Assembly (NCBI GenBank): GCA_002269645.1
Contig: NIVC01003875.1
Coordinates: 1-36,671, forward strand
Direction of reading: 5' to 3'
Length of the DNA stretch: 36,671 nt
Origin: Macrostomum lignano
Lineage: Eukaryota
The position numbers were made by a program, and so were the translations under genes. This document shows, piece by piece, positions 1 to 23,741 of this stretch. Position 1 is the first letter of the stretch, and the number at the start of each line of letters is the position of its first letter. The notes beneath the pieces were generated by a model, which did not search any database, had not been told where the DNA came from, and was given only the letters and a program-made list of their open reading frames with translations.

Positions 1-120
1 GAACAACAGGTACCGTCGAAAAGCTTGCGATAAGATGAAATGTCCGTTTTACTTTATTTGCATGTTTCCTTTGCAAAACTGCAGACGTGTACGATACGTG
101 CACACGCATCGTTTTCTGTC
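1..120 (+). repeat. 3' tail of an upstream array unit (long-junction form)
   Basis: Matches 31070-31189, part of the segment missing from the unit 1/2 junction. Confidence 0.93.
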
Positions 121-162
121 GTCTAGAAGCAACAATTTACCATACGGTAATTTAAAGGCTGC

Positions 163-290
163 GTGCATCCAACCCTGGCGCACTTTGGGCGTTTAAGCGA
201 CATTGTCACTTAAGCGACTCCCCTGGGCAGGCATACACACGAGCAGACCCCCACACAGGAGTGTACAGCGGCTTTGACTGTATTTATTTC
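163..290 (-). mobile_element. 5'-truncated, inverted copy of the tRNA-derived SINE (3' part only)
   Basis: Its reverse complement (…GCCGCTGTACACTCCTGTGTG…TATGCCTGCCCAGGGGAGTCG…ATGTCGCTTAAA…AAAGTGCGCCAGGGT) aligns with 560-695. Repeated at ~15319-15446 and ~31232-31359. Confidence 0.75.
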
Positions 291-364
291 TTTATAAAAT
301 TCGAAAAATTAGTTTTCAGGTAAATTTTCCTGTTTATAATCGAAGTTTATAAGCCGTGATGTTA

Positions 365-705
365 GGGGGGGGGGGCGTAGTCCAGCGGTCTAGCGCAGGC
401 TCTGGTGTGAGAGCAACCCAGGCTCGATTCCAAGTGCAGTCACATTAATTTGGGGCTGAATTGGAATTTCGGCTTGGCTCGCTTGTGCAATTAACGGCCT
501 TGAGAGCCAACCCCCAAGGCGCAGTGAAGTGTACATGCCTAACAATTGATAAAGTTAGGGCCGCTGTACAGTCCTGTGTGAGTGTGTGCCTGCGTAACGT
601 ATCCGCGCGTTGTATGCCTGCTCAGGGGAGTCGGCGGAATGGGCAGTAATGCCTCTCGCCGGTTGTGTGCCTATGTCGCTTAAAGTGCGCCAGGGTGCAC
701 ACAAC
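365..705 (+). mobile_element. tRNA-derived SINE, copy A
   Basis: G-run start. Pol III A-box-like TAGTCCAGCGG at 378-388 and B-box-like GGCTCGATTCC at 421-431. The body is not tRNA-like and is shared with a diverged copy at 10247-10636. Confidence 0.75.
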
Positions 706-2813
706 CCCCCTGTTTCTAATAAAAAAGCCGTGATGTTCCCTTTTTTTCAAATAATATAGATGAACCAAAGTTTTGCTGGAAAAACAAAAGACACGCAGAA
801 TTTTTATGCACTAGTTTGGTGTTAATTTGTAACTAGATTGTTTTAGCTGCAGAACCTGAAGTTTTTAAAAGGCCATACATGTATTGTCGGTTAAACTAAT
901 CAGCTGATGCATTTCACTAAAAAAATAATATTACGATTTCTGTATAACAATCTAAATAACTGTTACAGTGTATCTATTCGTTAACGAAATTTATAAACTC
1001 AATTTACTAGACTCATCCTAAACGCTGACTTCGAATAGTAGAAGTTATTTAGGGTTAGGCGAAGTGACGAAGACTGTTATTATAGCATAACGTGAAAGAC
1101 AGCGAGTATAAATGAACGAGGCCAGCAGACATAGACCGAAGAGCCGCTAGGTTCTGACCTTCGCTAGGTTACCGGCACTGCCATCAGAGATGTACCGCGA
1201 AATCGCCGAGCTGCGCCAATCTCCGAGCATTGAAAGCAGATGTCGCTCCACCACGGCGGAGCGAGTGCGTAGAGAAGCTGAAAGTTTCTGATGTGTCCCT
1301 TATTACCCGACTTATGGTAATCAAAGAACACTCACTTCTAGCTCAATAGCTAGGCAGCCCAGTAAGTCAATTAAAGGTACTTCTTACGTTGACGTCGCTT
1401 GGAGATATCTCTTCTGTAGTCTTCGAGTAGATCTCGCTTGTCTCTATGTGATCTCGTAGATCAGGCGCCTTGATTCTTCAGTTGCTCTGGTCCTGGTTCC
1501 TCTTGTACTTCCGATAAGTTCCTCCGGCCGGTATCTTCAGTCAGGACCAATCAGAGGCCTCGTATCAACAATGGGTACCCTGCGCCGAACAGCGGTTTGA
1601 ATTAAGCCTCCTTCTTCTAGCAGTGCCTTTATGCACTCTAGGTATGGCTCCGGAAACCACTGATAGTCCTCTAAGATCTATCAGGGGCAGTCCTTCTGGA
1701 GACTGCAACCAATGGAGTCTAAACAGACTCAAGAGTCTCAACAGACTCAAATAGACTCAAGTCTCAATAGACTTGAGCGAGACGTCTCTAACACAACGGG
1801 CGCAAATAAGGAAGGCTTACCGCAACAACTCGACCGAGTCTCGATTGACTTGGTGATCAGGAAGTCCTCCTAAGGCTTCCTCTTCGGAGCTTCTCCTCTC
1901 GTCGGGAGTTGGCTCCTGGTCCGCTTCGGACCGCTTGTATTTATAGGCAACTTTTTGATCCAAAATAGCATCATTACAAACCACGTGTTGCGCTAAAAGG
2001 GGAAAATGGCTCATGGCGTATCATTTTGGTAACATCTTTTCCTGGTAGCGTGATTCATTCAAAGCTTAGGCGCACATGCGTGTACTTACTTACTTATAGT
2101 AGCATTATACGATTATCTTCTTTTAACCTTTTTTAACGGGAGGTAGAACACTCTACATTTCCATTCCGGTCTTGCGAAACAAACGCTGCAGGCGGTGGCG
2201 AACCTCCACTGAGTCAGAAGGCCACCAAAATGGCGGCTCTGACGGACTAAGAATACGGGAAAGCTCTGAGACGTATCGAGAATTAGATTCAGCTGCCAGA
2301 GATGTCGGGGCGCAATTTGAGAGCGGCTGCTGAGCTCGGACCCATGACCGGGAGCTGGAGCTGGTGTGGATGCGCTCACCGATCAGCACTGTCTTTGAAC
2401 GAGCTACATAGATGGCCCGATTTCGGGTCATCCCGCCAGCCCCGAAGCGAACGGCCCGCGTTTGCAAAAGTCTATGGCAAATCAACCATCATCTCAGCAC
2501 ACCCGTTGCCGACGGGAATGGCCCGATTTCGGGTCAGCGTCTAACAATGTTGCAAAGAGTAGATTACGCAAAAAAATATTATTAGCTTAGAGATGTCATA
2601 CCTGTAATTATAATAACTCGTTTATAATAAAAATACTGCGGCAGTTTTCAACAAAACTGTAAAAATTGCTTTTACGAAGTAAGCTTGTTCCCAATGAAGC
2701 CGGAATAGTCTAATTACATGATTTATTAGGGACATTTTTAAAGAGGGAAATGATTTACAGACTGGAGCATCTGCAAGATACGAAAAAGTAAGCTGGTACA
2801 ATGGGTAGGTATT

Positions 2814-2909
2814 TAGGTAGGTAGGTAGGTAGGTAGGTAGGTAGGTAGGTAGGTAGGTAGGTAGGTAGGTAGGTAGGTAGGTTAGGTTAGGGTTAGGGTT
2901 AGGGTTAGG
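2814..2909 (+). repeat. (TAGG)17 followed by TTAGG(TTAGGG)3TTAGG
   Basis: Read directly. 17 units at 17971-18038 and 18 units at 33884-33955. Confidence 0.97.
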
Positions 2910-3131
2910 CTGAAAATTATTTGGCTTTTTTTACGCTATCACCTTGATTGCTGAGTGTACAGGCTGAAGTTTGAAGGCAACGAAAATGGAATAAAAAGGT
3001 AGACGAGAAGAATAAACAGACGATGCTGTCATATGTCATGCATGCATAAATTTTCCATCCTAACTTTTTTATGCGTAGCGTTTCTGTGAAGACACTTATA
3101 TACGAGTAACAATACAACAGCTTCAGCTTAT
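2907..3131 (+). repeat. ~225-bp interspersed repeat, unclassified
   Basis: A diverged inverted copy (roughly 90% identity by eye) lies at 30698-30923 with unrelated flanks. Array copies at 18064-18288 and 33981-34205. Confidence 0.85.
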
Positions 3132-3926
3132 AGGTTCAAATTTGTAAATTCTGTCCTACTCAAAGCTAAAAAACACGTATGATCATTGTATGAGCATTAT
3201 GTCGTGTTCCATTTTAATTAACTAAAAATAAGTTGTTTTGCAGTTGGAAGACATGTGATGTGTTTTAGGAAAAAACGACTCCACAGATTCATTAAACATT
3301 CTATCTGTTCTAAAATTAGCAAAGCATTCGACTTAAGCGACAGAAGTCCTCGTACACTGTCTTAACAAGTTTTCATTGCTTTCCATAAAGCACCATCCAA
3401 CCCAGTCAATAGTTTTAGTTTTCACCTGAGATTTCTTGTAAGACCATTATAGTTTAAATGTACTACACTTCGCTATGCTTTGATAGCAAATTATGAAGAT
3501 ATGAAATCAATTCTCTATATTGATATGACCAAAACACCAGAAATACTTCAGGGGGTGATTTCTGAAATGAAGTGTTGAGATACGGCACACTTTTACCTTC
3601 AAGGCATTCTGTATTACAATATTTATGATTTATTACGTTCTATATGGATAAACTCGAAACCAAAATCAGCGAAAATTGGAAGTCTTGTGTCAAAATTAGC
3701 CTCGAAATTAGTGGAAGAGTTGCCTAGATATTGCCAGATTTGGTTTTATATACTTTAATTAAAAGCTGTCTAAATTTGATGTTCGGCCTGTTTACTGGAA
3801 GTTGATTTAATTTAGTGGAAAGAAGATTAACGGGCATAAATACGAACAGGAACACTGAAACAGCAGTTTTCCGCTTACTAGCTCGTATGCCATGCCCGCA
3901 GCGCCCTGCAGCTGAACCAGACTGCG

Positions 3927-6900
3927 ATGAAAACATGCACCAGATTTTTTCGTTACTTTCAACTCATTGTGTTTGGCTTGTTATTTTGGTTTTCTCCATC
4001 CGGTACGTTTATTCTGTTTTGATTAGAGTCAGAAAAAACCAGTTTGCTCTTGCTAAAACGTGGGTTACTAAAAACGCAGAGTGCTGTTCCGGTAGGACGC
4101 TTTACTCGTCATCTGGAACGATCGCGTGCCCCTCCTCTGGAGGCCAGTATTCAAACAATTTGGATGTTTCCTGGTCTATTCGACCACGTGGTGTCAGCCG
4201 AATCCGATTCAGCAAGCTGGATGTGGATTCGTGCTGCGACAAAGTTTTAATTTATGAAAGCGCAATCTACGCATCAAGCAGCTCAGAGAAGTTTCGACTT
4301 GTGCATGCAAACGCGACTGAGTCTGAGTTCTGGGTGAATTCGCCCTTTGTTGTGCGGTTTCGAAGTGACGGGTTTCACACGAGATCCGGATTTCGGCTTT
4401 CTTACGAACGCCAGTGGGAATCGATTCCAGGTGAATTTTATGCCTTACGTTTATAACAGCACTCTGGTTGACTTTTGCTGATTTATTTGATCTCGGATGA
4501 AAATGGAATTTCAGCTGCTACTGAGGTCATTCGGCAGAGAAGCGGTGTCAGACGGAGCCATCCAGATGTCGGGTCCTACCGCAATAACTACAAAAAAGCT
4601 TGGAGTATTTACGTGCCCAGAAATTCCCGTGTTTTCATTCGATTCACAAAGTTCAACACGGAATCTGGCCGCGACTATCTTAGGATATATTCAGGACTTG
4701 TTCCGCGATATCAACACACGGCTCTGCAAGCGATTTCAGGCAATCATAGAATTCTTCATCCGTCATACACGTTTTCGCATAGCGTTACCCTAATTTTCAC
4801 TACTGACGGCTCTGTTGTCCGTGAAGGGTTCGAATTTGAGTTCAATGTCCGTGAGTGATACAAGACGTCAACAGTATCTGGCAGTTTTTTCAGTTTTATT
4901 CAATTCAGAAGTTAAACTGTTCAGTGCAGAAAATATAAGTTAAAAGTTATGCAATCTTATGTTTATAGTTTCTTTTCTCGGCCAGATACGGACAGAGAAG
5001 CAACATAGTTTCCATAGTTACTCGTAGTTACATAAATCTGAATAAGTCTCAACATTGTTTATGTTGATGCAGGTTATTTGTACTACGGATTATGCGCCAT
5101 CGGCCTATCGATTATAATGGATAATTAGTTTTAAGCAATGAGAAGAGAACTCTTATAAATTCTCTTTAGATTACATAAATATTATCAACTTCCACAAAAA
5201 ATCTTAACGCTGCTACATTTACTCAGTTTGATACTCTTTACAGATGATCATGAATTACTGTGGATCTTTTCAAAATGGACCAGAATGGCCATAGGTGGCT
5301 CGAAATTCAGTTTTTCACTGCTTTCTATGGATCGAAATGTATCAGCTAGGTGTTACTTAGATCTTGAATGTGGAAGGCAAACTTCGGAGATCGCAATGAA
5401 TTCCGTAAGCCGGGCATTTATCTGCATTAAATTTTCGAAAAAAGTGCTATATACGAGCGTAATTACTGGTTTAAGTTTTTCTTATAACTTTGCATAGTGA
5501 AGGTAATATCTCTTGACCTTTCAAGTTTGCATTCAAAAGCTTGGACAAATTTAAAGAGCCTCAGATTATATATGAATTGTTTTTGCAATTCCTCCAGACG
5601 ATCTACTCACAATGAAGATCAGTTAAAAAATTGTACCTGTTTTCTGGAATCATCTCAGACACTGCTGTCTGCATTCGAAACATCACGTGCAGATTCCGTG
5701 GCAGCGGTATCAATGAACTGATTGAATCGACTCCAGCACCTGATGGTAAACAACTTTCTTCAATCAGTTTTTGAGACTCTGCATAGATGTTTTTGAAGAA
5801 GCGAAGTGTCTGTATTGCAATATTAGCAAAGCGGTTCAGTAACTGTAGCAGATTTTGATTATCCTGCTCTAGTTTCCTTCATACATATGAATAACTTTCA
5901 GTTAAGCCAGCTTCACTTGAAATCAGCCTGATAAAGCCTGAGCTGTGGAGCCTCTCAGATAGTTTGATTCGGTTTCGAGCTGTGTCTCAAGCCGAGTGTC
6001 GGCGAGTGAGGCATCGCTGCGAGCTGAGGCTTTTCAATGGAAGCGCAGTCACTGCTGTGCAAGTGAAGCGGGTAAGAATAATGTAACAATGCGTAGTTAA
6101 AATATTTAGCATAATATAATATACTTAGAGTAATTGCTATGATAGGCGTGTACAACTAAACGATGTACACTGTAGGCCCGTACTGATATGCAGATATACG
6201 CAATTGTATTTTCCTTCAATTTACAATACCCAGCTAGCGTATTTTTATTCTGATACAATTGCTACGTCAAAACTTCAGCAAGCATCACAGCCACGTATTT
6301 CTCAGTGTGTGAGCAGAGTTCAAACAGATTTTACTCTGCTGGCTGAGCTCATCGACACAGTCAATTCTACGATAATTTGTTACAAGCAAGCCGGAACAGT
6401 CAACTATTCTCTGCCGGCTATGCAACTGCGTGAGTTGAGTTAAGATTATGAAGTTAATGCATAAATATATGCGTATAATATAAATAATGTATATAGAGCT
6501 CATTAAAAACAGGAATTTTATGTATGCGCATAAAATCACTACGTTAGAATATATAACAGTATATAGCTATATAAATATACATAAAAATATATATATATAA
6601 TATATATATATATAAATATAATATATTAGAATATATAATATATATAACTATAGAATCTTCATACGAGCGTAGAAGCATGATTAGCGATATAGAAAAAAAG
6701 CGAGAACGATTACGAAAGATTTTAACTGATTTATTTTTGTGATTAATTTCATTAATTTTTAATCAAATAATTAACTTATTTGACTCTGTTTTTAAATGAA
6801 GTAAAAAGGTGACATTTGCGAGAGTAGGTTTGCAGAGTTTAAATCATTTGTTCAACGTATGTCATATGTACCAGCTGATTTATTCAATGTTTGGAATGTC

Positions 6901-8291
6901 GAATAAAGAAAGGTATTATTATGATCGGCTCCTTACAATGGTCATTTCCTTATATCAGCTGTTCGAGAAATTCAATGGAGATTCCCAGAGTCTACTGAGA
7001 TCGCTGCGGGTGCTCCAATGCGCATTTTATTAACAACAGCTGCAAGCATCCGAGGCCTGTCAGCGAAATGTCGGCTGCACCAGGAGTGCGAGAATGGAAC
7101 CATCGAAGTCCCGATCCGTGTTGTAAGATATAATCAAAATATTTGATACTTAATGAAGGCAAAAAGAAATAATAATTTTGGCTAAACATATTTGGCATCC
7201 GATTAATGTCTATTAAGGTTGATACTATTTGATATATACTTCTTGTGCGAAGTACTAGCCATATTTCCCACAATATGCATACACCATCAATTATGAAGTT
7301 CACTCGTCGTTTTACCTGCTACCACAGGATCGAATCGTCTCGACATCTTCGGGAAAAGTATTCCAGTTTTTTGGACGATGGCAGCGTCAAGTGTGCAGCC
7401 GCAATGTGTCTTGCGCATTCTCTGTGCCAGGAATGCTCGGTTCGATTGAATTCAGCCAATTACCTCCAGGTATTGCTGTTGACCTCTCTTGTGATTCATT
7501 TATTTCATAACAGCTCATAAAAACATGCGTTCTTAATGCATTTACAACCGTTTCTCCGTTTTATTGATTTCAGTTGAACCAAATGACTTACAGCTTAAGT
7601 TGATTGATCCTGAGCTGTGGCTACTCAACGGAGCAATTCAGTTCCGTGCGGTTTCCGAACACGCCTGTCCCAGTGTGAGGCACCGCTGTGAGCTGAGGAC
7701 GGCTACTAACTATTCGATTCCCGCGACGCTAATAAAGAAGGTTGTTTTTGTCTGTTGGCAGCATTATGTAGCTCGCTATTTGTGCAAGATAGTATGCTTT
7801 GCTTAACTTCAGGATGTCTCGAAGCCCATCGGGCCGCAGTGCTTCAGCTCGGTGATGTCGCAGTTCTTGGCGTTCGCTCAGCCATCAGACGTAGCGGGTT
7901 CCACCGTGAGGTGCCGCCTGCTCAACGGCAGCTCTGCGCTGCTCGTGCTTCCCGAAAAGGGTTTTGGTGAGTTTCGCAGCTGATTTCAGATGTTATACAC
8001 GAGAAAGCAGCCCTGCTTTAAATATCGCCTCCATCAACAGGAGAGACGAGGCTGGCCGAAGTCTGGGAGCGGCCACTGCTAGCAGCTTCATCAACTACGG
8101 CTGTTCTCGCCATCATTGCACTGGTAGCAGTGGTGGCCTGCTTTGTGCTGATGAGATCTGGTCGGTGGCCACCTTGGAAAAAATCTCCGGATGCGTCAGT
8201 AGTGAATGAGTCAATGAAGATGCAAATGACAGTCAGTAACCAATATTATGGCGAATCAGCAGGCATTGTAAGCAGCTTTAATGTGATTTGA
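3927..8291 (+). CDS. 12-exon type I membrane protein gene, copy 1: signal peptide-CUB-CUB-X1-Y1-X2-Y2-TM-cytoplasmic tail, with in-frame TGA in exon 5
   Basis: Exons 3927-4002, 4080-4430, 4515-4850, 5244-5404, 5598-5745, 5902-6071, 6279-6429, 6959-7122, 7328-7469, 7574-7740, 7813-7966, 8041-8291. All 11 introns are GT-AG (72-529 nt) with compatible phases. Signal peptide MKTCTRFFRYFQLIVFGLLFWFSPSEC. CUB motifs YSNNLDVSWSI...FRSDG...GFRLSY and YRNN...WSI...FNTE..RDYLRIY...FTTDGS...GF. Internal homology exon 4~8, 5~9, 6~10, 7~11. TM LLAASSTTAVLAIIALVAVVACFVLM. Stop TGA at 8289-8291. Confidence 0.88.
6540..6655. repeat. AT-rich low-complexity (TA)n-like tract in intron 7
   Basis: Almost pure A/T with TATA iterations. 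Also at ~21697-21812. Confidence 0.85.
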
Positions 8292-8588
8292 GGCACCAGA
8301 CTTCATCATATTTTCAGCAATGTCAAATTATTAATCATGCTTGCATCCGACTTTCAGCCTGATGACTCAACCGGAGTTTACGTCACGTGAAAGAGCCACC
8401 AAAAATGACTAATTACTACATACAGAAGACGATCGATACGAGCTAAAAAACCTAAAAATCTAGGGCAGTAGCTTTTTCTAAAATTTTTAACCTAGGTCTA
8501 TTGCTGCTATAGTTTTACTTTGCTTAAAAGTCAGTAATTACTTTCAACATTAGGTGTATATGTATCTGATAAATTCGGCAACATTTGA

Positions 8589-9210
8589 CTCAGCAACAGT
8601 CAAAAGTTCTACCCTCCAAATTGCAAAAACTTCACACTCACAATTCAACCCTCAAGTTACGCAACTAAGCCGCCGCGAGGAAGGGAAAGTTGATTGAATA
8701 TCAATACTCGTAGTAAAATCATAATTTTTTATGCAATATTTAGTTAGAATCGCGATGCGTGTGGGATCCCCTCGCACGCAGTAAGTGCGACGACTCTGCG
8801 GGGCATCCCAATGATGAGGCGGCGCAGAAAGTCCTGGGGAAGCCGCTCCGAAGCGTTTTCAATGGCATGACGCAGAGCTCTCCGCAACATTCTGTGGTGG
8901 ATTCTCTTTTCGAATGCTACGTTTTAGGAAGTCCCAGACATGCTCGATGGGATTCATGTCTGGGGACCGGGAAGGCCAGCGCAGAGTGCGCAGCTGTAGC
9001 TGTTCCTTCAGTTGACTAACAGCATCGGCTTGGTGTGGCGGGGCGTTGTTCCTGAGCTAGGTCTGCTTAATGTCCAGGCCTGGACCATTAAGCAGACCCA
9101 AGCCACCCCCAAGCGGCAATAAGCTTTGCGCGTGCCGTAGGTTGCGTCACTCGCAATAAGTTAAAAAAATCATCACGCTTAGTGGGGTGGAACTTTTGAC
9201 TGTTGCTGAG
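8589..9210 (-). mobile_element. Internally deleted Tc1/mariner (Tc1, DD34E) element, 622 bp
   Basis: 26-bp TIRs CTCAGCAACAGTCAAAAGTTC(T/C)ACCC (8589-8614 and 9185-9210, 25/26 identical), with TA after the right end. The minus strand (8744-9054, two frameshifts) encodes Q[D]NAPPHQADAVSQLKEQLQLRTLRWPSRSPDMNPIEHVWDFLKRSIR…LPQDFLRRLIIGMPRRV. This is the Tc1 DNAxxH/WPxxSPDxNPIE signature, with 34 residues between D and E. Confidence 0.9.
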
Positions 9211-10246
9211 TATATCAATATTAACCCGATGTAATAGCCTCTCCTGTACTCCTGATGGTCCTGATGCTTTATATAGTATAAAGTAAAACCAATTATCTTG
9301 TCATTTACTCAAGGTAGGTAATGCTCAACTGTAGAGCACTAATTAAAACAACATTGATCATCAATAAATAACTTTGCAATCCAATAGATAAAATGATTGA
9401 TTAAATTCTGTGTTTTTGACCTTGATGAAATTTGAAATTGCGAATCGACGGTTTTAAAATATTTGATAAGAAGTATAATCACGCCAATTTATTTCTACTG
9501 AAGTTTTTCGTCTGTTTGGTTTGGTGTTTAAAGTTATTGCGAGATTATTGCAATTGAAATTTAGATTTAAAATTAATAAGTCTGTAAATTTCATCAATCT
9601 TTAGCATCAAGTCTTTAGCAACATGTATATCCGTTTGCTATTATAAGTTATTTTATTTATAGATGTTTCTTGTCCTTACAGAAGTGACAGCCTACTAGAA
9701 GATAGTATAGTAGCTCTAGCTTAGAAAAAGTATTAGCTTAGTTCGCTTGGACTCGGGTATTCATTAAAACCGCATGAAATTCTAAGATTCGGTGTCAGCG
9801 TTTGGGTGGAGTCTAGTGACGAAGTTTATTAATATATTATATAATATATTCAATACCGAATAGAAACGCTGTAACAATTATACAGACTGTACTATAAGAG
9901 TTATACTACAAGCTATTAAAGTTCTTTACTGAAATACATCAACCGATTAATTTATTGATAATATGGCTTTCTAAAACGTTTAGGCTCTGCAGTTTATTCG
10001 CAAACAGTCTAGCTGTACATGAACGCCAAAGCTTATGCATAAAAATGCTGCGCATCTCATTGTTGCCAACAGAATTTTGGCCAATTTTTATCATGTGAAA
10101 CATTAAATTCTTCCTTGCCGCAGTGCAAGGGGTGCAAGGGCTTATAAACTTCAAATATAAACCGGAAAATGTAATGTACGCTCGTACCTGACACTAGGCA
10201 TTCGCATTTCGCTTGATGGCTCAAGCAATAAAAATTTAATTACACC

Positions 10247-10636
10247 GGGCCGTAGCCCAGTGATCTATAGTGAGGTAGTGTCTGCGGCCCAGGCTCGAGT
10301 CAAAGTGCAGTCACATTTATTGAAGTCCTAATTGGAATCTCAGCTTGGCTCTGCTCATGCAATTAGCAGCCTTGAGGGCCAATCACAAGGCGCAGTGAAG
10401 TGTGCATTCTAGACGATAATTAAATAAAGTTAGGGTTGCTGTACACTCCTGTGTGAGAGGATAATTAAATAAAGTTAGGGCTGCTGTACACTCCTGTGTG
10501 AGAGGATAATTAAATAAAGTTAGGGATGCTGTACACTCCTGTGTGAGAGTATGCCTGTGCGTATGACTGCGTACGTATCCGTGCGATTGTGCTCAGGGAG
10601 TCGTGGGAATGGGCAGTAATGTCTCTCGCTGGTTTT
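10247..10636 (+). mobile_element. tRNA-derived SINE, diverged copy B with internal 3x45-bp duplication
   Basis: A-box-like TAGCCCAGTGA at 10253 and B-box-like GGCTCGAGTC at 10292. Shares AAGTGCAGTCACATT, AATTGGAAT, CAAGGCGCAGTGAAGTGT and GGAATGGGCAGTAATG with copy A. Unit 2 copy at 25400-25790. Confidence 0.75.
10415..10549 (+). repeat. 3 x 45-bp tandem repeat GATAATTAAATAAAGTTAGGG(T/C/A)TGCTGTACACTCCTGTGTGAGAG
   Basis: Units at 10415, 10460 and 10505 differ at one position. Also at 25568-25702. Confidence 0.97.
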
Positions 10637-11306
10637 GTGACGAAACTTTTTTCTTACTTTTTTATCTTACCCGTATTGCACACATGTATTAGTAGCTGAT
10701 CTCTGTTAGCATACCATTTGTACAAGCTTACTATAAAAAAACAGAAACGACAGCGAGACAGCTTGCTTATCAGGGCATACCTGCAGATATCTCAGATCCT
10801 GTAAGCGTCCAAGTTAAATTGCAACCATGGGAGGTTATGTATACGACGAACATTCAAATGAAAAAGTGCTCCAATGGTGGCAAAAACTTTCATTGGCAGT
10901 AGATTTTGGCACGCTGAAGACACAGGCCGAGTAAAAAACTTGGCTAAGAATAAAGCATACTCAAGCTATCAAGCCTAAAGCCCTGATAAAATGAAGTACG
11001 ATCGTAGATGTGTCGTCGGATTGTCAGATCCACCGCGAGATTATTTTATCTTTCGATCAAATTAGTTTTTTTACAGTTACTTGTTCTTTAGTTTGTGCAA
11101 TTTCACTCTTGGACGTTTTTGACTCACTAAGTAATTGTTCTTGGTCACGCACCAACCCATATAATGGCTGTGCACGCTACTCTCTAGTCGTATGCACTTC
11201 AGCTAAGCCGACCACTAAGCAGCTAAAGGGCACGCTCTACTGTCTTATAAACTTGCAATCAACTTCCCTCGGTCTCCGAACCCATAAGTTCGCAATGCTA
11301 TTTGCA

Positions 11307-11580
11307 CTCAGCAACATTGAAAAGTCGCCACTCTTTGCTCCAATGAGCAATTTCTCTTGAACTTCTAGTAATTCTGAAAAAAATTACTAGAAAACTGATC
11401 GGGTAGCTTTAATCCGTCCAACCCTCGCACACCGCTCCCCCCACTTCATTCCTTAACTCAAGTCTGCCGTGGCGTAGCTGATTTGCGTCACTCGCAAAGA
11501 TTCAGAGACTTTACCTGCACTCTCAAAAGTGGCGACCTCGAAGGAATCTTCGGTGATGGAGAATTTTCGGTGTTACTGAG
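11307..11580. mobile_element. 274-bp MITE-like element with Tc1-type CTCAG termini
   Basis: Left end CTCAGCAACATTGAAAAGTCGCCACT. Right end (reverse complement) CTCAGTAACACCGAAAA[27 nt]GTCGCCACTTTTG, followed by TA. Shares the subterminal TTGCGTCACTCGCAA with the Tc1 element (9142-9156). Unit 2 copy at 26461-26734. Confidence 0.65.
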
Positions 11581-12415
11581 TATATAGGGCCCGATATATA
11601 CGATAAGATCGTTTTTAACTCCTATCTCCACAGTGTAAAAGTTCCTACGTACGATCAAACTTACGCTACGACAGCTTTAGAGTACGACCCCATAGTTTTT
11701 AAATGCGTTCTCGTCAGGACGATCAGATCGATGAAGCGGTGGGAAGCCAAGGCAGCTGACGCATTGAAATTGAACCTTACCCCGATTGTCAAGGCAACTT
11801 CGTGAGTTTTAACAAACATTAAAATTACTCCGCGAATGAATACATTTTTTACGATAATGAAATTTGAACATACCCACGCGCTTATTGTTGATCGTAATCT
11901 AGTCTCTAAAATTTAGATCTAAAAAGACACTAAAGTTTCTTGACTAACAGCGCGGTTTTAACTGATATTCATCCATCCATAGATCTTCGTTCATGCATAG
12001 AAGAAATGAAGTTTTTTCTGTTTGCAGAACAATTAACCTCAAAAGTCATCAGTTAATGAATGAACGAATATGAACAGATTGTCAACACAAAATACCATAA
12101 AATATTGATTTTTGCAAAATTCATGATATTAATTTCGAGCTGATGTGCAAAGCTTTTTATTGCATATTAACAAAATTGTATGAGTCTGTGAAATTCCAAC
12201 AGAAATTCAAATTTATCATTCTGAATTCTCCTATTTAAGTTTCTATTCATCCTTAGATACATACAGATTGTCAATTATGGTTTCTAGGTAAATTGCTCGC
12301 AAAAATAAATTAAACTGTCAATAAACTTAACTCGATCAAGAACGGTTGTTCTTTTGAAAGCAGGATCATTAAGAGCCACTCAAAATAGGCCTTCTGATGA
12401 CAAAGCGAACTGAAC

Positions 12416-12715
12416 TTATTCGGGGAGCGTTTGATCAACATGATTTACTTTGCCAACAACGGATCCCCGGGCACTCGGATCAACCCAACAACGAGATGAC
12501 CAATCACCAATTAGCCCTTTCTTTGACCCCCTGCCTGTGGCCTCCATCCCACTGCTATTGTAACCACTTGTGGGGGTGCAACGAAGCACAAGGAGAGATA
12601 ACCGCCGATAGTTCAGCTCTGCCGGCAGGATCCCCTCTTCCTCCTGCCCTCCGCAGGCCTTGCTTGGAATCAACCGCAGTCTGGCACCAAGGCGGTGACC
12701 ACGGCTATCTCAGGT
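12416..12715 (-). pseudogene. Degenerate DDE transposase fragment, probably Kolobok/Mutator-like type
   Basis: Broken minus-strand frames give AVVTALVPDCG, SKAC, GYNSSGMEATG, LIGDWSS and KVNHV. These resemble, in order, motifs I recall for Kolobok-type transposases (GVVTAI..TG, SKxCxxC, GSSxxME, GDGDSS, ECxNHV). Family assignment is from memory and has not been searched. Unit 2 copy at 27570-27869. Confidence 0.42.
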
Positions 12716-13242
12716 CATGGCTGGTCAGTTCAAGGAAGCATTTAATTTTAGAATGCCTCCTCTTTATTTAGGACAGGCTCACCGCGGCGCAAATCTGGAT
12801 TTTTTCGACAGTTTCAAGCACGGGAATTTCTGCCACCTCGTCCATGCCTAAGGGCTACCGGGCGACCGATCACTCACCTCCTGGAGGGGGACAGAACTGA
12901 GAACACCGGCACCACGGGATCTCCCTGCGCGACACAGTAGCACCAGCTGCCCGTGATCGGCAGGGGTCTGCGGAATGGACGGCAACACCTCCCTTCTGCA
13001 CCCATATTCTGGGAAGCCTTGCAGCTAATTCTAGCGGCAAGTGTGCAGTGTCCGTCATACAAAAGCTCGCAGTTGATAAATCAATCGTTTTTACAAGCCC
13101 GTACTCATGGACAAAGAAGACAAACGCTATAATATCCCTCTCGCAATACAGTTCGAAATAAACTGATACATACTTCCCCACCAACACACTGCGCGCTTTT
13201 TGCTAAAAGTAGTTGGTGAAGTCTCTTGCTAAAGTTTTCGAA

Positions 13243-13395
13243 TTCGATGTTGTGAAATTTTGACCTTGTGAAGTTTCGACCTTGTGAAAGTGGTTGCTAT
13301 TTGAGTTCTCGATGTTATGAAATTTCGACCTTGTGAAATTTCGATCGTGTGAAAGAAGGTGCTTTCGACGTTGTGAAATTTCGAGTTTGTGAAAC
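13243..13395. repeat. Degenerate 16-bp repeats (TTGTGAAATTTCGACC-like, ~7 copies) ending in GAAACCCCC; probable DNA-transposon subterminal repeats
   Basis: Read directly. Unit 2 copy at ~28396-28548. Confidence 0.75.
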
Positions 13396-14098
13396 CCCCC
13401 TTCAATGAATGGCTTCGAAAAGGAACATATTTGGCCCAGCCAGAAATTTGAATCCCTTGGGGAGTGGAGGGAGTGGGCCTGTACAATATCGAAAATATAC
13501 GATTCCCCATTCCCTTGCATTTTCTGTATCCCCTGTCACCCTTTTTCTGCGCTAACACCACTGAATAGAGGCCAGCTAAATTCCCAAAAGACACCACAGA
13601 TCCGAACCACCAAGAGCGCTTTCTTCTGAAAATAAAGTTCGTTCATTTCTTGGCATTGAGTTGGGTGTGTCAATAATTTCAGCATTAACGACAGTTAAAT
13701 TGATCAAATTTGAGTGTTGAGAACTATATGTTCGAATAATTGAACTAAATTTTTATCAATGTGTTTCATTAACTGGTTACTAACTCTTTTAAGGCTTATT
13801 AAGCCGTTATTACCCATGTGAATGTTACAGTTATTATATTTTTTACATTTTAATTACAAAGTTTAGCCTTTCAACAACGACGCCTAATCTGTTTTGCATA
13901 CTTGTCCTGTCTTACATTTACTACAATGAACAACAGTATCTGCTTGTAACTATCTATACTTCGAGATTTGTGTGTCATCTGAAACGAAAGGGTTGGTATT
14001 TTTAGCAAATATATACTTTCACAATCACATTACAGTGTGAGTTACAAACGTACAAATATTACAAACTCCATAAAAATTTACAACCGAAACAAATTCAC

Positions 14099-14217
14099 GG
14101 GGCGCTTTCATTAGGCAAAAATTTCACTTTGCCGAAAAGCACTCTCTTTCACTAGGCCGAACCTTATGGAAGAGCATACTCGGCAATGTGAAGTTTCGGC
14201 TTAGTAACCCCCCCCCC
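14099..14217. mobile_element. ~120-bp MITE-like imperfect inverted repeat
   Basis: Left arm GGGG…TTCATTAGGCAAAAATTTCACTTTGCCGA versus right arm (reverse complement) GGGGG…TTACTAAGCCGAAACTTCACATTGCCGA. Unit 2 copy at 29253-29370. Confidence 0.5.
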
Positions 14218-14330
14218 AAATTCACTAAGGTGGCTTTAAGCTACCTCAAATTTCCGAATTTCAAATCTTCAAACCCAAAAAGCAAAAAACTAAGACAGTT
14301 TTTCACTCAATCCCCCATAGCATTGCTCCA

Positions 14331-14566
14331 CTCCTCTCTACCCTCTCTCCCCTCTACCCTCTCCCCTCTCTACCCTCTCTCCTCTCTAGCCTCTCTCCCC
14401 TCTACCCTCTCTCCTCTCTACCCTCTCTCCTCTCTACCCTCTCTCCTCTCTACCCTCTCTCCTCTCTACCCTCTCTCCTCTCTACCCTCTCTCCTCTCTA
14501 CCCTCTCTCCTCTCTACCCTCTCTCCTCTCTACCCTCTCTCCTCTCTACCCTCTCTCCTCTCCCTA
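14331..14566. repeat. Polypyrimidine minisatellite, 16-bp unit CCCTCTCTCCTCTCTA
   Basis: Read directly. The unit 2 tract (29484-29700) is ~19 bp shorter. Confidence 0.95.
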
Positions 14567-15137
14567 CTTCTTTTCTAAAAGCCCGCTTTCTAAAAGCGCA
14601 AATATTTACAGGTGTAAATTTATCGTCAATTTGATGCTTTTAATCTTCTTTCGACTGCAAACAAAAAGTTGTTCTCGGGGGCTCTTAGCTCTACGCTACT
14701 AAAAGTAGTCTGATGCGCATTTAAATTTTATGAAACTTCACACATCTTTCCGAAAAAAATTATTTCACAATGTTGGCACTAGGCAACAGCAAATATAGCC
14801 CTAACGTTTATTGTAAAGAGTAACCACCTATTATTGTGATAAAAAACGGTTCTCCCGCTAGGCTGAAAGGGCAGTGCTATTAAATAAAGCTGCCTTGAAC
14901 ATGAAACACGCCAAACTTAGGTTGCCGCCTCATAGGCCGCCGGGCGATCACCGGGCGGCTTCGATTAGGATTAAAAAAATCGTCCATATTAAGGCTATAT
15001 AAAGTATTACGAGTAAAAAATCACCATTTCTCATTGAAAAATCAGATCATATTTCATTGTAAAGTGTAAATAAAAATATTTACCGACTGCCCTCACAGGC
15101 GGCCGCGAGGGCGCACACCGCCCACTGTACGCCCCAC

Positions 15138-15272
15138 TTAGTTGTCCCACTGGTCCCAGTGTCCTTCACCAGACTCTTTATTGCCAGCCTCAAAATGCAG
15201 AAAAGTCTTTGTGTCACCGGACTGTCGGTAGATCACCCACGATTTCCGCACAAGCATCGCAAGAAGATGAAA
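15138..15272 (-). pseudogene. Last 135 bp of the piggyBac remnant left at the deleted unit 1/2 junction
   Basis: Matches 30272-30406 with one substitution, then breaks off at the deletion. Confidence 0.85.
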
Positions 15273-15520
15273 AGATGTCTAGAAGCAACAATTTACCATA
15301 CGGTAATTTAAAGGCTGCGTGCATCCAACCCTGGCGCACTTTGGGCGTTTAAGCGACATTGTCACTTAAGCGACTCCCCTGGGCAGGCATACACACGAGC
15401 AGACCCCCACACAGGAGTGTACAGCGGCTTTGACTGTATTTATTTCTTTATAAAATTCGAAAAATTAGTTTTCAGGTAAATTTTCCTGTTTATAATCGAA
15501 GTTTATAAGCCGTGATGTTA

Positions 15521-15861
15521 GGGGGGGGGCGTAGTCCAGCGGTCTAGCGCAGGCTCTGGTGTGAGAGCAACCCAGGCTCGATTCCAAGTGCAGTCACATT
15601 AATTTGGGGCTGAATTGGAATTTCGGCTTGGCTCGCTTGTGCAATTAACGGCCTTGAGAGCCAACCCCCCAAGGCGCAGTGAAGTGTACATGCCTAACAA
15701 TTGATAAAGTTAGGGCCGCTGTACAGTCCTGTGTGAGTGTGTGCCTGCGTAACGTATCCGCGCGCTTGTATGCCTGCTCAGGGGAGTCGGCGGAATGGGC
15801 AGTAATGCCTCTCGCCGGTTGTGTGCCTATGTCGCTTAAAGTGCGCCAGGGTGCACACAAC
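15521..15861 (+). mobile_element. tRNA-derived SINE copy A, unit 2
   Basis: Same as 365-705 apart from homopolymer-scale indels. Confidence 0.75.
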
Positions 15862-18800
15862 CCCCCTGTTTCTAATAAAAAAGCCGTGATGTTCCCTTTT
15901 TTTCAAATAATATAGATGAACCAAAGTTTTGCTGGAAAAACAAAAGACACGCAGAATTTTTATGCACTAGTTTGGTGTTAATTTGTAACTAGATTGTTTT
16001 AGCTGCAGAACCTGAAGTTTTTAAAAGGCCATACATGTATTGTCGGTTAAACTAATCAGCTGATGCATTTCACTAAAAAAATAATATTACGATTTCTGTA
16101 TAACAATCTAAATAACTGTTACAGTGTATCTATTCGTTAACGAAATTTATAAACTCAATTTACTAGACTCATCCTAAACGCTGACTTCGAATAGTAGAAG
16201 TTATTTAGGGTTAGGCGAAGTGACGAAGACTGTTATTATAGCATAACGTGAAAGACAGCGAGTATAAATGAACGAGGCCAGCAGACATAGACCGAAGAGC
16301 CGCTAGGTTCTGACCTTCGCTAGGTTACCGGCACTGCCATCAGAGATGTACCCGCGAAATCGCCGAGCTGCGCCAATCTCCGAGCATTGAAAGCAGACGT
16401 CGCTCCACCACGGCGGAGCGAGTGCGTAGAGAAGCTGAAAGTTTCTGATGTGTCCCTTATTACCCGACTTATGGTAATCAAAGAACACTCACTTCTAGCT
16501 CAATAGCTAGGCAGCCCAGTAAGTCAATTAAAGGTACTTCTTACGTTGACGTCGCTTGGAGATATCTCTTCTGTAGTCTTCGAGTAGATCTCGCTTGTCT
16601 CTATGTGATCTCGTAGATCAGGCGCCTTGATTCTTCAGTTGCTCTGGTCCTGGTTCCTCTTGTACTTCCGATAAGTTCCTCCGGCCGGTATCTTCAGTCA
16701 GGACCAATCAGAGGCCTCGTATCAACAATGGGTACCCTGCGCCGAACAGCGGTTTGAATTAAGCCTCCTTCTTCTAGCAGTGCCTTTATGCACTCTAGGT
16801 ATGGCTCCGGAAACCACTGATAGTCCTCTAAGATCTATCAGGGGCAGTCCTTCTGGAGACTGCAACCAATGGAGTCTAAACAGACTCAAGAGTCTCAACA
16901 GACTCAAATAGACTCAAGTCTCAATAGACTTGAGCGAGACGTCTCTAACACAACGGGCGCAAATAAGGAAGGCTTACCGCAACAACTCGACCGAGTCTCG
17001 ATTGACTTGGTGATCAGGAAGTCCTCCTAAGGCTTCCTCTTCGGAGCTTCTCCTCTCGTCGGGAGTTGGCTCCTGGTCCGCTTCGGACCGCTTGTATTTA
17101 TAGGCAACTTTTTGATCCAAAATAGCATCATTACAAACCACGTGTTGCGCTAAAAGGGGAAAATGGCTCATGGCGTATCATTTTGGTAACATCTTTTCCT
17201 GGTAGCGTGATTCATTCAAAGCTTAGGCGCACATGCGTGTACTTACTTACTTATAGTAGCATTATACGATTATCTTCTTTTAACCTTTTTTAACGGGAGG
17301 TAGAACACTCTACATTTCCATTCCGGTCTTGCGAAACAAACGCTGCAGGCGGTGGCGAACCTCCACTGAGTCAGAAGGCCACCAAAATGGCGGCTCTGAC
17401 GGACTAAGAATACGGGAAAGCTCTGAGACGTATCGAGAATTAGATTCAGCTGCCAGAGATGTCGGGGCGCAATTTGAGAGCGGCTGCTGAGCTCGGACCC
17501 ATGACCGGGAGCTGGAGCTGGTGTGGATGCGCTCACCGATCAGCACTGTCTTTGAACGAGCTACATAGATGGCCCGATTTCGGGTCATCCCGCCAGCCCC
17601 GAAGCGAACGGCCCGCGTTTGCAAAAGTCTATGGCAAATCAACCATCATCTCAGCACACCCGTTGCCGACGGGAATGGCCCGATTTCGGGTCAGCGTCTA
17701 ACAATGTTGCAAAGAGTAGATTACGCAAAAAAATATTATTAGCTTAGAGATGTCATACCTGTAATTATAATAACTCGTTTATAATAAAAATACTGCGGCA
17801 GTTTTCAACAAAACTGTAAAAATTGCTTTTACGAAGTAAGCTTGTTCCCAATGAAGCCGGAATAGTCTAATTACATGATTTATTAGGGACATTTTTAAAG
17901 AGGGAAATGATTTACAGACTGGAGCATCTGCAAGATACGAAAAAGTAAGCTGGTACAATGGGTAGGTATTTAGGTAGGTAGGTAGGTAGGTAGGTAGGTA
18001 GGTAGGTAGGTAGGTAGGTAGGTAGGTAGGTAGGTAGGTTAGGTTAGGGTTAGGGTTAGGGTTAGGCTGAAAATTATTTGGCTTTTTTTACGCTATCACC
18101 TTGATTGCTGAGTGTACAGGCTGAAGTTTGAAGGCAACGAAAATGGAATAAAAAGGTAGACGAGAAGAATAAACAGACGATGCTGTCATATGTCATGCAT
18201 GCATAAATTTTCCATCCTAACTTTTTTATGCGTAGCGTTTCTGTGAAGACACTTATATACGAGTAACAATACAACAGCTTCAGCTTATAGGTTCAAATTT
18301 GTAAATTCTGTCCTACTCAAAGCTAAAAAACACGTATGATCATTGTATGAGCATTATGTCGTGTTCCATTTTAATTAACTAAAAATAAGTTGTTTTGCAG
18401 TTGGAAGACATGTGATGTGTTTTAGGAAAAAACGACTCCACAGATTCATTAAACATTCTATCTGTTCTAAAATTAGCAAAGCATTCGACTTAAGCGACAG
18501 AAGTCCTCGTACACTGTCTTAACAAGTTTTCATTGCTTTCCATAAAGCACCATCCAACCCAGTCAATAGTTTTAGTTTTCACCTGAGATTTCTTGTAAGA
18601 CCATTATAGTTTAAATGTACTACACTTCGCTATGCTTTGATAGCAAATTATGAAGATATGAAATCAATTCTCTATATTGATATGACCAAAACACCAGAAA
18701 TACTTCAGGGGGTGATTTCTGAAATGAAGTGTTGAGATACGGCACACTTTTACCTTCAAGGCATTCTGTATTACAATATTTATGATTTATTACGTTCTAT

Positions 18801-19083
18801 ATGGATAAACTCGAAACCAAAATCAGCGAAAATTGGAAGTCTTGTGTCAAAATTAGCCTCGAAATTAGTGGAAGAGTTGCCTAGATATTGCCAGATTTGG
18901 TTTTATATACTTTAATTAAAAGCTGTCTAAATTTGATGTTCGGCCTGTTTACTGGAAGTTGATTTAATTTAGTGGAAAGAAGATTAACGGGCATAAATAC
19001 GAACAGGAACACTGAAACAGCAGTTTTCCGCTTACTAGCTCGTATGCCATGCCCGCAGCGCCCTGCAGCTGAACCAGACTGCG

Positions 19084-22000
19084 ATGAAAACATGCACCAG
19101 ATTTTTTCGTTACTTTCAACTCATTGTGTTTGGCTTGTTATTTTGGTTTTCTCCATCCGGTACGTTTATTCTGTTTTGATTAGAGTCAGAAAAAACCAGT
19201 TTGCTCTTGCTAAAACGTGGGTTACTAAAAACGCAGAGTGCTGTTCCGGTAGGACGCTTTACTCGTCATCTGGAACGATCGCGTGCCCCTCCTCTGGAGG
19301 CCAGTATTCAAACAATTTGGATGTTTCCTGGTCTATTCGACCACGTGGTGTCAGCCGAATCCGATTCAGCAAGCTGGATGTGGATTCGTGCTGCGACAAA
19401 GTTTTAATTTATGAAAGCGCAATCTACGCATCAAGCAGCTCAGAGAAGTTTCGACTTGTGCATGCAAACGCGACTGAGTCTGAGTTCTGGGTGAATTCGC
19501 CCTTTGTTGTGCGGTTTCGAAGTGACGGGTTTCACACGAGATCCGGATTTCGGCTTTCTTACGAACGCCAGTGGGAATCGATTCCAGGTGAATTTTATGC
19601 CTTACGTTTATAACAGCACTCTGGTTGACTTTTGCTGATTTATTTGATCTCGGATGAAAATGGAATTTCAGCTGCTACTGAGGTCATTCGGCAGAGAAGC
19701 GGTGTCAGACGGAGCCATCCAGATGTCGGGTCCTACCGCAATAACTACAAAAAAGCTTGGAGTATTTACGTGCCCAGAAATTCCCGTGTTTTCATTCGAT
19801 TCACAAAGTTCAACACGGAATCTGGCCGCGACTATCTTAGGATATATTCAGGACTTGTTCCGCGATATCAACACACGGCTCTGCAAGCGATTTCAGGCAA
19901 TCATAGAATTCTTCATCCGTCATACACGTTTTCGCATAGCGTTACCCTAATTTTCACTACTGACGGCTCTGTTGTCCGTGAAGGGTTCGAATTTGAGTTC
20001 AATGTCCGTGAGTGATACAAGACGTCAACAGTATCTGGCAGTTTTTTCAGTTTTATTCAATTCAGAAGTTAAACTGTTCAGTGCAGAAAATATAAGTTAA
20101 AAGTTATGCAATCTTATGTTTATAGTTTCTTTTCTCGGCCAGATACGGACAGAGAAGCAACATAGTTTCCATAGTTACTCGTAGTTACATAAATCTGAAT
20201 AAGTCTCAACATTGTTTATGTTGATGCAGGTTATTTGTACTACGGATTATGCGCCATCGGCCTATCGATTATAATGGATAATTAGTTTTAAGCAATGAGA
20301 AGAGAACTCTTATAAATTCTCTTTAGATTACATAAATATTATCAACTTCCACAAAAAATCTTAACGCTGCTACATTTACTCAGTTTGATACTCTTTACAG
20401 ATGATCATGAATTACTGTGGATCTTTTCAAAATGGACCAGAATGGCCATAGGTGGCTCGAAATTCAGTTTTTCACTGCTTTCTATGGATCGAAATGTATC
20501 AGCTAGGTGTTACTTAGATCTTGAATGTGGAAGGCAAACTTCGGAGATCGCAATGAATTCCGTAAGCCGGGCATTTATCTGCATTAAATTTTCGAAAAAA
20601 GTGCTATATACGAGCGTAATTACTGGTTTAAGTTTTTCTTATAACTTTGCATAGTGAAGGTAATATCTCTTGACCTTTCAAGTTTGCATTCAAAAGCTTG
20701 GACAAATTTAAAGAGCCTCAGATTATATATGAATTGTTTTTGCAATTCCTCCAGACGATCTACTCACAATGAAGATCAGTTAAAAAATTGTACCTGTTTT
20801 CTGGAATCATCTCAGACACTGCTGTCTGCATTCGAAACATCACGTGCAGATTCCGTGGCAGCGGTATCAATGAACTGATTGAATCGACTCCAGCACCTGA
20901 TGGTAAACAACTTTCTTCAATCAGTTTTTGAGACTCTGCATAGATGTTTTTGAAGAAGCGAAGTGTCTGTATTGCAATATTAGCAAAGCGGTTCAGTAAC
21001 TGTAGCAGATTTTGATTATCCTGCTCTAGTTTCCTTCATACATATGAATAACTTTCAGTTAAGCCAGCTTCACTTGAAATCAGCCTGATAAAGCCTGAGC
21101 TGTGGAGCCTCTCAGATAGTTTGATTCGGTTTCGAGCTGTGTCTCAAGCCGAGTGTCGGCGAGTGAGGCATCGCTGCGAGCTGAGGCTTTTCAATGGAAG
21201 CGCAGTCACTGCTGTGCAAGTGAAGCGGGTAAGAATAATGTAACAATGCGTAGTTAAAATATTTAGCATAATATAATATACTTAGAGTAATTGCTATGAT
21301 AGGCGTGTACAACTAAACGATGTACACTGTAGGCCCGTACTGATATGCAGATATACGCAATTGTATTTTCCTTCAATTTACAATACCCAGCTAGCGTATT
21401 TTTATTCTGATACAATTGCTACGTCAAAACTTCAGCAAGCATCACAGCCACGTATTTCTCAGTGTGTGAGCAGAGTTCAAACAGATTTTACTCTGCTGGC
21501 TGAGCTCATCGACACAGTCAATTCTACGATAATTTGTTACAAGCAAGCCGGAACAGTCAACTATTCTCTGCCGGCTATGCAACTGCGTGAGTTGAGTTAA
21601 GATTATGAAGTTAATGCATAAATATATGCGTATAATATAAATAATGTATATAGAGCTCATTAAAAACAGGAATTTTATGTATGCGCATAAAATCACTACG
21701 TTAGAATATATAACAGTATATAGCTATATAAATATACATAAAAATATATATATATAATATATATATATATAAATATAATATATTAGAATATATAATATAT
21801 ATAACTATAGAATCTTCATACGAGCGTAGAAGCATGATTAGCGATATAGAAAAAAAGCGAGAACGATTACGAAAGATTTTAACTGATTTATTTTTGTGAT
21901 TAATTTCATTAATTTTTAATCAAATAATTAACTTATTTGACTCTGTTTTTAAATGAAGTAAAAAGGTGACATTTGCGAGAGTAGGTTTGCAGAGTTTAAA

Positions 22001-23446: not shown

Positions 23447-23741
23447 GGCACCAGACTTCATCATATTTTCAGCAATGTCAAATTATTAATCATGCTTGCA
23501 TCCGACTTTCAGCCTGATGACTCAACCGGAGTTTACGTCACGTGAAAAGCCACCAAAAATGACTAATTACTACATACAGAAGACGATCGATACGAGCTAA
23601 AAAACCTAAAAATCTAGGGCAGTAACTTTTTCTAAAATTTTTAACCTAGGTCTATTGCTGCTATAGTTTTACTTTGCTTAAAAGTCAGTAATTACTTTCA
23701 ACATTAGGTGTATATGTATCTGATAATTCGGCAACTTTTGA

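Follow-up and report, generated by a model that had tools for sequence, protein, structure and literature searches.

A duplicated pair of four-cysteine modules, probably Ig-like, in a CUB-domain membrane protein gene of the flatworm Macrostomum lignano

The question raised by this locus is whether two alternating four-cysteine modules, named X and Y and encoded in the order X1-Y1-X2-Y2, can be assigned to a described kind of domain, and in what kind of gene they are found. The window, which is the whole stretch of 36,671 nucleotides analysed here (contig NIVC01003875.1 of Macrostomum lignano, assembly GCA_002269645.1), is eukaryotic, intron-bearing DNA in which a first-pass annotation had placed the four modules at positions 5244-7966 of the forward strand and had been unable to assign them to any family. 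XY is a lineage-specific pair of modules, orphan at the level of sequence and probably Ig-like, carried here by a gene copy that is probably disabled. The full account, which joins an Ig-like XY pair, an M. lignano family, a cassette duplication, a stalk role and a disabled copy, is judged reasonably probable as a whole.

The interval proved exact: it opens with the first base of exon 4 (5244) and closes with the last of exon 11 (7966). The reported sequence strings are correct, and the cysteine positions bear out the two C-x5-C motifs of X as well as C-x6-C and C-x23-C of Y. All the exons are on the forward strand and each module comprises two of them. X1 is formed by exon 4 (5244-5404), which contains the first half with the first C-x5-C, is entered in phase 1, left in phase 0 and aligns with exon 8, and by exon 5 (5598-5745), which contains the second half with the second C-x5-C and an in-frame stop; the acceptor of exon 5 is homologous to that of exon 9, and the paralog locus L001 is 90% identical here. 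Y1 is formed by exon 6 (5902-6071; LIKPELW...FRAVS...C-x6-C...ELR) and exon 7 (6279-6429; C-x23-C), X2 by exons 8 (6959-7122) and 9 (7328-7469), and Y2 by exons 10 (7574-7740) and 11 (7813-7966), first and second halves respectively. Module lengths are 103 codons in X1, 107 amino acids (aa) in Y1, 102 aa in X2 and 107 aa in Y2, as in the range of 102-107 aa given before. The cysteines occupy positions 37, 43, 79 and 85 of X1, 38, 44, 78 and 84 of X2, 33, 40, 67 and 91 of Y1, and 32, 39, 66 and 90 of Y2. All 16 are kept between the two cassettes, and the four of each module are kept across divergent paralogs (invariant in alignments A6, A7 and A8). In both cassettes every module has phase 1 outer introns and a phase 0 inner intron at a homologous site (1-0-1).

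The four-exon XY cassette is duplicated in tandem in the subfamily of the window gene, giving a four-module ectodomain. X1Y1 aligns with X2Y2 by BLASTP at E=8e-34 (35% identity over 192 aa), X1 with X2 at E=4e-9 (27% identity) and Y1 with Y2 at E=6e-25 (43% identity), all of them highly significant, and the exon sizes run in parallel (161+148 and 164+142 nucleotides in X; 170+151 and 167+154 in Y). With these alignments, an identical four-exon structure and identical phases, and the existence of paralogs with a single cassette (one in P0014 and P0016, two in P0001), the earlier proposal of an XY cassette doubled once within the gene is supported. Since the more distant paralogs have a single X-Y pair, X-Y is the unit and its doubling is confined to the window-gene subfamily. 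The phase 1 outer borders and the phase 0 inner intron allow the cassette to be copied or skipped without loss of frame.

The host gene was identified on the forward strand of each unit of a tandem repeat and rebuilt as 13 exons, all with canonical AG/GT splice sites and with the frame unbroken across exons. Its predicted product is a type I membrane glycoprotein of 759 codons with 10 N-x-S/T sequons within XYXY, in the order signal peptide, two CUB domains, X1-Y1-X2-Y2, transmembrane (TM) helix and short tail. An intact full-length paralog, P0001 (BOX15_Mlig014562g1), is annotated in GenBank with 759 aa and 89% identity, and the database proteins made of exactly the exons of the window gene are all from M. 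lignano. P0014 (Mlig019335) has the order CUB x4-X-Y-TM and P0016 (Mlig034133) the order CUB x2-X-Y-TM, the plan of the family in this species being CUB(2-4)-[XY](1-2)-TM. A signal peptide, at least two CUB domains, at least one X-Y pair with 4+4 conserved cysteines, a juxtamembrane WE(R/L)PL motif, a TM helix and VY(V/L)(T/N) at the end of the tail are shared by the window gene, P0001, P0014 and P0016.

Database searches used the segments of P0001 equivalent to the window modules. The XY profile compared by HMMER with 1.84e9 representative proteins gave 12 matches at E<=1e-3. The top 10 are from M. lignano by their source names; the two weakest, a repeat protein of bacterial appearance (P0012) and an unidentified one (P0013), most probably match by chance. 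M. lignano alone was also returned by two word-indexed searches, which covered 5.8e9 proteins and one of which used a broader five-sequence profile, and no ortholog of the window gene outside this species was found in the protein database searches. As far as databases show, the XY family is lineage-restricted, to M. lignano in those searched. One paralog, A0A1I8HM97, carries the UniProt name 'Ig-like domain-containing protein'.

The Ig-like assignment comes mainly from predicted structure. With AlphaFold2 (AF2), X2Y2 of P0001 was modelled from an alignment of five paralogous cassettes, and X alone from six sequences. The XY model (mean predicted local distance difference test, pLDDT, 83.6; predicted TM score, pTM, 0.71) is all-beta except for two short helices, with pLDDT per 10-residue block of 78-96 in Y and 65-87 in X; the X-alone model has a pLDDT of 76.6 and nine strands. 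Depending on the model, X is predicted with 6-9 strands, and Y with 8 DSSP elements (two nearly continuous) in addition to the two short helices. The beta-sandwich folds suggested by the first-pass annotation are thus supported at the level of prediction, and the models agree with the two-sheet sandwich of 7 to 9 strands and ~100 aa that marks Ig and FN3 domains. Foldseek searches of the PDB with the XY model gave 14 matches at E<=1e-3 (best 1.7e-4), all of them two-domain Ig tandems with probability 0.98-1.0, and the rest of the 50 listed matches were also two-domain Ig tandems. They comprise heavy and light chains of Fab fragments, the gamma-delta T-cell receptor (TCR), RAGE V-C1 (TMq 0.42-0.44) and nectin-2 D1-D2 (TMq 0.41), and they span the whole query. 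In the viral database BFVD, Ig tandems are among the better matches of the XY model (herpesvirus gC, a CD200-like poxvirus protein and one like an interferon (IFN) receptor), but the top match there is the 2c protein of tobacco rattle virus. The Y half, which is modelled with high confidence, probably drives the match of the pair to Ig tandems, the only single-domain model being that of X. The models point to an Ig-like fold in the pair and give no significant neighbour for X alone.

The cysteines bear on the same question. The first and fourth cysteines are 58 residues apart in Y and 46 in X, distances that in our estimation are compatible with the usual range of the disulfide between Ig strands B and F, and LSAKCRL in X and TVRCRLLNG in Y are similar to motifs of the Ig B and F strands. 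The earlier argument from cysteine spacing against Ig domains is therefore weaker than it looks, as it compares neighbouring cysteines only and the first-to-fourth distance would fall within the B-F range. No conserved tryptophan was found in the X and Y sequences at the position expected of the strand C residue against which this disulfide packs in canonical Ig domains.

The preferred reading is the following. X and Y are distinct ectodomain modules of ~105 aa, each a predicted N-glycosylated beta-sandwich braced by putative disulfides, and they always come as a pair, after the N-terminal CUB domains and before the TM helix. Their carriers form a small type I membrane family, specific to M. 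lignano in the databases searched, with a signal peptide, 2-4 CUB domains, 1-2 XY pairs, a TM helix and a short tail that has VYVT or VYLN at its end. The pair would fold like an Ig-like tandem, with sequences diverged past detection by any hidden Markov model (HMM). Its putative function is that of a stalk or recognition region that distances the ligand-binding CUB pair from the membrane in a cell-surface receptor or adhesion protein.

The copy of the gene in the window is interrupted. An in-frame TGA is present at codon 314, in exon 5 of X1 (5613-5615, forward strand), where locus L001 has CGA (Arg); L001 reads CAG CGA AGA and the window CAA TGA AGA, with the acceptor, the frame and the flanking residues conserved. 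Compared with L001, the TGA reads as a C-to-T nonsense change at a CpG (CGA-to-TGA), and because of it X1 is not translatable from the window copy as a 103-residue module. The frame is kept solely by skipping both X1 exons (4 and 5); the database models P0002 and P0003 leave out exons 3-5 and thereby avoid the stop. Two ways of reading through exon 5 were rejected. Selenocysteine recoding is discarded since the paralog has CGA and there is no selenocysteine insertion sequence (SECIS) element, neither this nor any other Rfam family being identified in the window. Rescue by an alternative acceptor is discarded since the two downstream AG sites are in phase 1 and the donor of exon 4 in phase 0.

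By self-BLAST the whole locus is a unit of 15.15 kb present in ~2.4 tandem repeats: positions 121-15272 and 15277-30406 are 99.6% identical, and 1-5600 and 31070-36671 are 99.8% identical. Copy 2 of the X1-Y1-X2-Y2 exons is found at 20401-23123 of the forward strand, in the second unit (window coordinates +15157; 99.6% identity by self-BLAST), and a third copy starts at 36315-36671, also on the forward strand, from exon 4 onward, and is cut off at the window edge. Exons 1-10 of copies 1 and 2 are identical and exon 11 has 6 substitutions; over 3701-8400 there are 20 differences, all within 7829-8393 (copy 1 coordinates). Copy 2 carries the same TGA (20770-20772), as the copies are identical over 3701-7828. 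In addition, exon 12 of copy 2 (23198-23424) has two 1-nucleotide deletions, equivalent to positions 8056 and 8219 of copy 1, which shift the frame through the TM region and the tail. The TGA, the tandem repetition of the locus and the frameshifts in exon 12 of copy 2 had gone unreported in the first-pass annotation. Either a segmental duplication of very recent date or an artefact of assembly could account for the array. If the TGA and the frameshifts are not errors of assembly, the window copy is probably a young pseudogene or a null allele; in the preferred account it would have been disabled by the CGA-to-TGA change in X1, within the very recent 15-kb tandem repeat, with two frameshifts in unit 2.

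Several results weigh against this account. At E<=10, Pfam hmmscan matched no family, Ig, I-set, V-set, C2 and FN3 included, in any of the X, Y or XY sequences. The matches of XY to Ig domains are of low TM score (0.30-0.45) and 6-13% identity. X alone gave no Foldseek match in the PDB at E<=1e-3 (best E>=0.046, TMq<=0.45), and its best, non-significant neighbours are assorted beta-sandwiches: the C-terminal domain of a phage tailspike, VP2 of the birnavirus IBDV (infectious bursal disease virus), the lectin Nictaba and nucleoplasmin. Several of these are jelly-roll folds, not Ig domains, and no Ig domain is found among the 50 listed matches of X alone. The AF2 models were built on 5-6 paralogous sequences, and their strand topology and disulfide pairing are to be read as predictions only. 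The ratio of nonsynonymous to synonymous substitution (dN/dS) against the paralog is ~0.52 over XYXY (0.66 in X1, ~1.1 in Y1, 0.46 in X2 and 0.24 in Y2), values which indicate weak constraint and part of which may reflect decay of the window copy. Finally, errors of assembly are in principle a possible source of both the TGA and the frameshifts.

At the level of sequence the absence of an assignable family therefore stands, as Pfam and the PDB sequence searches were both empty: on the whole protein Pfam matched only the two N-terminal CUB domains, and the profiles of XY, X and Y drew no PDB sequence under E=0.4. The same verdict does not extend to predicted structure. The model of the XY pair matches tandem Ig domains (Foldseek probability 0.98-1.0), weakly and at TM scores of 0.45 or less, so by the test that the first-pass annotation had set itself, a structural hit to a described family, the modules are not wholly unassignable.

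Among the other explanations of XY, it seems unlikely, while deserving some weight, that X and possibly Y form a new beta-sandwich family unlinked to Ig, the Foldseek matches of the pair being due to generic sandwich geometry and X being a small jelly-roll-like domain with two C-x5-C staples. X alone has no significant structural neighbour, the HMM and PDB sequence searches were empty, X and Y are mutually unrelated by hhalign (P=0.04-0.05, no relationship detected) and one species holds the family in the databases searched. On the other hand, the listed PDB matches of the XY model are all Ig tandems, and Ig-like viral glycoproteins are among its better BFVD matches, in alignments of the whole query; the X-alone model is less confident and a shallow alignment can distort topology; and an extracellular module of ~100 aa flanked on both sides by phase 1 introns is typically an Ig or FN3 domain. 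A related proposal, tentative but possible, keeps the two halves apart: X would be an undescribed small beta-sandwich family with a twin C-x5-C, confined to macrostomids and with no PDB neighbour above a TM score of 0.45, and the obligate partner of a divergent Ig-like Y, XY being a receptor block invented in this lineage and multiplying by four-exon cassette duplication. That X is instead a degenerate CUB or other jelly roll derived from the neighbouring CUB domains, with an ectodomain of the form CUB-CUB-(CUB-like + Ig-like) x2, is improbable. The gene has two CUB domains already, CUB domains are ~110 aa long with four cysteines, and the structures that X weakly resembles are beta-sandwiches, with several jelly rolls among them; but X has no Pfam CUB match at E<=10, hhalign detected no relationship between the CUB domains of the gene and either X (P=0.7) or Y (P=0.52), C-x5-C is unlike the CUB pattern, and each CUB domain here lies in a single exon, unlike X with its internal phase 0 intron. 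The PDB contains many CUB structures, and none is found among the 50 listed Foldseek matches of X alone or XY. The first-pass annotation had itself set CUB aside, and these results uphold it.

A divergent ZP module (ZP-N plus ZP-C), in an architecture like the CUB-CUB-ZP-TM of CUZD1, is very improbable. The likeness, which rests on the ZP module and the architecture of CUZD1, consists of two successive four-cysteine Ig-like half-modules, with eight cysteines per pair, between the CUB domains and the TM helix. Against it, Zona_pellucida of Pfam was not matched at E<=10, no ZP structure is found among the 50 listed Foldseek matches, no furin-type, R-x-x-R or dibasic site was found from Y2 to the TM helix, and the XY pair has ~210 aa against ~260 aa in a ZP module; moreover, the cysteines of ZP-N, C1-C4 and C2-C3, are far apart and do not form C-x5-C, and XY is tandemly duplicated. 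The cytokine-receptor homology region, two FN3 domains with four cysteines in the first, was considered and rejected. It shares with XY a two-sandwich unit of ~210 aa and short-range disulfides stapling neighbouring strands (putative in XY), but in XY both modules have four cysteines, Y lacks WSxWS and no FN3 or cytokine-receptor family of Pfam was matched. That the modules are not real domains, but chance open frames or a mis-drawn gene model, is hardly credible. The in-frame stop of the window copy and the weak constraint against the paralog (dN/dS ~0.5) would fit it, but all 13 exons have canonical splice sites and join in one continuous frame, the cysteines are conserved across cassettes and paralogs, the AF2 models are confident, and the intact 759-aa paralog in GenBank, with the other intact paralogs, effectively refutes it.

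The Ig-like reading of XY has its closest counterpart in the tandem Ig pairs of surface receptors (RAGE V-C1, nectin D1-D2, antibody and TCR V-C), a likeness that holds at the level of predicted two-domain structure only and fails on profiles. Common to both would be two successive all-beta sandwiches of ~100 aa, extracellular, glycosylated and membrane-anchored (predicted for XY); the borders of the XY modules are phase 1-1, and the XY model retrieves these pairs from the PDB. Differences are the four cysteines of each XY module, in contrast to one B-F pair and a tryptophan, the absence of an HMM match, the low identity and TM scores given above, and the failure of X alone to retrieve Ig domains. 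A second comparison is with the CUB type I membrane proteins (neuropilins, Neto, CDCP1 and LEV-10, SOL-1 and M02D8.5 of C. elegans), which resemble the window gene in their signal peptide, in having CUB domains at the N-terminal end, and in a short tail behind one TM helix. The region of P0001 equivalent to CUB2 also matches PF23062 (CUB_M02D8_5_3rd, the third CUB domain of the M02D8.5 kind) in precomputed annotation, a match that sits on CUB2 and not on X or Y. Next to the membrane those proteins have FA58C/MAM, LDLa or additional CUB-like domains, unlike the X-Y of the window gene.

If the Ig-like reading is true, the family would be a clear example of lineage-specific growth of surface receptors by copying of a four-exon cassette of symmetric phase, with module sequences drifting past HMM detection while the fold stays. 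The finding is modest; it has no bearing on a long-standing open question and the window copy is probably non-functional. As XY has no Pfam model, flatworm proteomes label its carriers merely as 'CUB domain-containing', and X and Y profiles would improve the annotation of Macrostomum, a model for regeneration and sex allocation. The literature on M. lignano CUB proteins and on the Mlig gene identifiers contained nothing relevant, expression and function included.

The remaining exons of copy 1 are all on the forward strand. Exon 1 (3927-4002) comprises the start codon and the signal peptide MKTCTRFFRYFQLIVFGLLFWFSPS; it has a GT donor and its reading frame runs on into exon 2, and P0001 starts in the same manner. 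Exon 2 (4080-4430) encodes CUB domain 1, with two vicinal Cys-Cys pairs, and exon 3 (4515-4850) encodes CUB domain 2, without cysteines. Pfam CUB (PF00431) matches the whole protein at E=7.6e-16, in two stretches within residues 26-254 only, and the best stretch in exon 3 comprises residues 162-252. The vicinal pairs of CUB1 are at residues 27-28 and 77-78, with a further Cys42, and the cysteine patterns of both domains deviate from the usual four-cysteine CUB pattern. Exon 12 (8041-8267) comprises the juxtamembrane WERPL motif, the TM helix (8076-8153) and most of the cytoplasmic tail, and its WERPL motif is kept in P0014 and P0016. Exon 13 (8358-8390) encodes the C-terminal PDDSTGVYVT, the same as in P0001, and the stop codon. 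The WE(R/L)PL motif and a C-terminal tyrosine motif ((E/G)VYVT, EVYLN and EVYVTLPN; YVTL in P0016) are kept among otherwise divergent paralogs, which hints at a shared signal for trafficking, sorting or signalling.

Several of the UniProt models of the family, derived from an M. lignano assembly (P0002-P0006, P0008 and P0010), leave out exons or translate exons 11-12 out of frame, e.g. as ...RDEAGGSLGAATASSFINYGCSRHHC... Two names look like mis-annotations: 'CST complex subunit CTC1' in P0004 and 'Glyco_hydro_38C domain-containing' in P0008.

Other elements were identified in the repeat array. The junction of units 2 and 3 (30407-31069) contains ~660 bp of extra sequence, and at 30698-30923 there is an inverted 226-bp copy, with 96% identity, of 2907-3131, 18064-18288 and 33981-34205. 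A fragment of a DDE_3 transposase of Tc1/mariner type (Pfam PF13358, E=1.2e-10) is found just 3' of the gene, at 8862-9056 of the reverse strand. A dispersed element of ~170 bp is present at 417-582 and 10288-10457 with 81% identity. Simple repeats are (GGTA)n at 2804-2887 and a 45-bp unit x3 at 10411-10549; a CT-rich 16-bp unit x14.5 with strong negative GC skew occupies 14331-14562, and intron 7 contains an AT-rich tract at 6560-6647.

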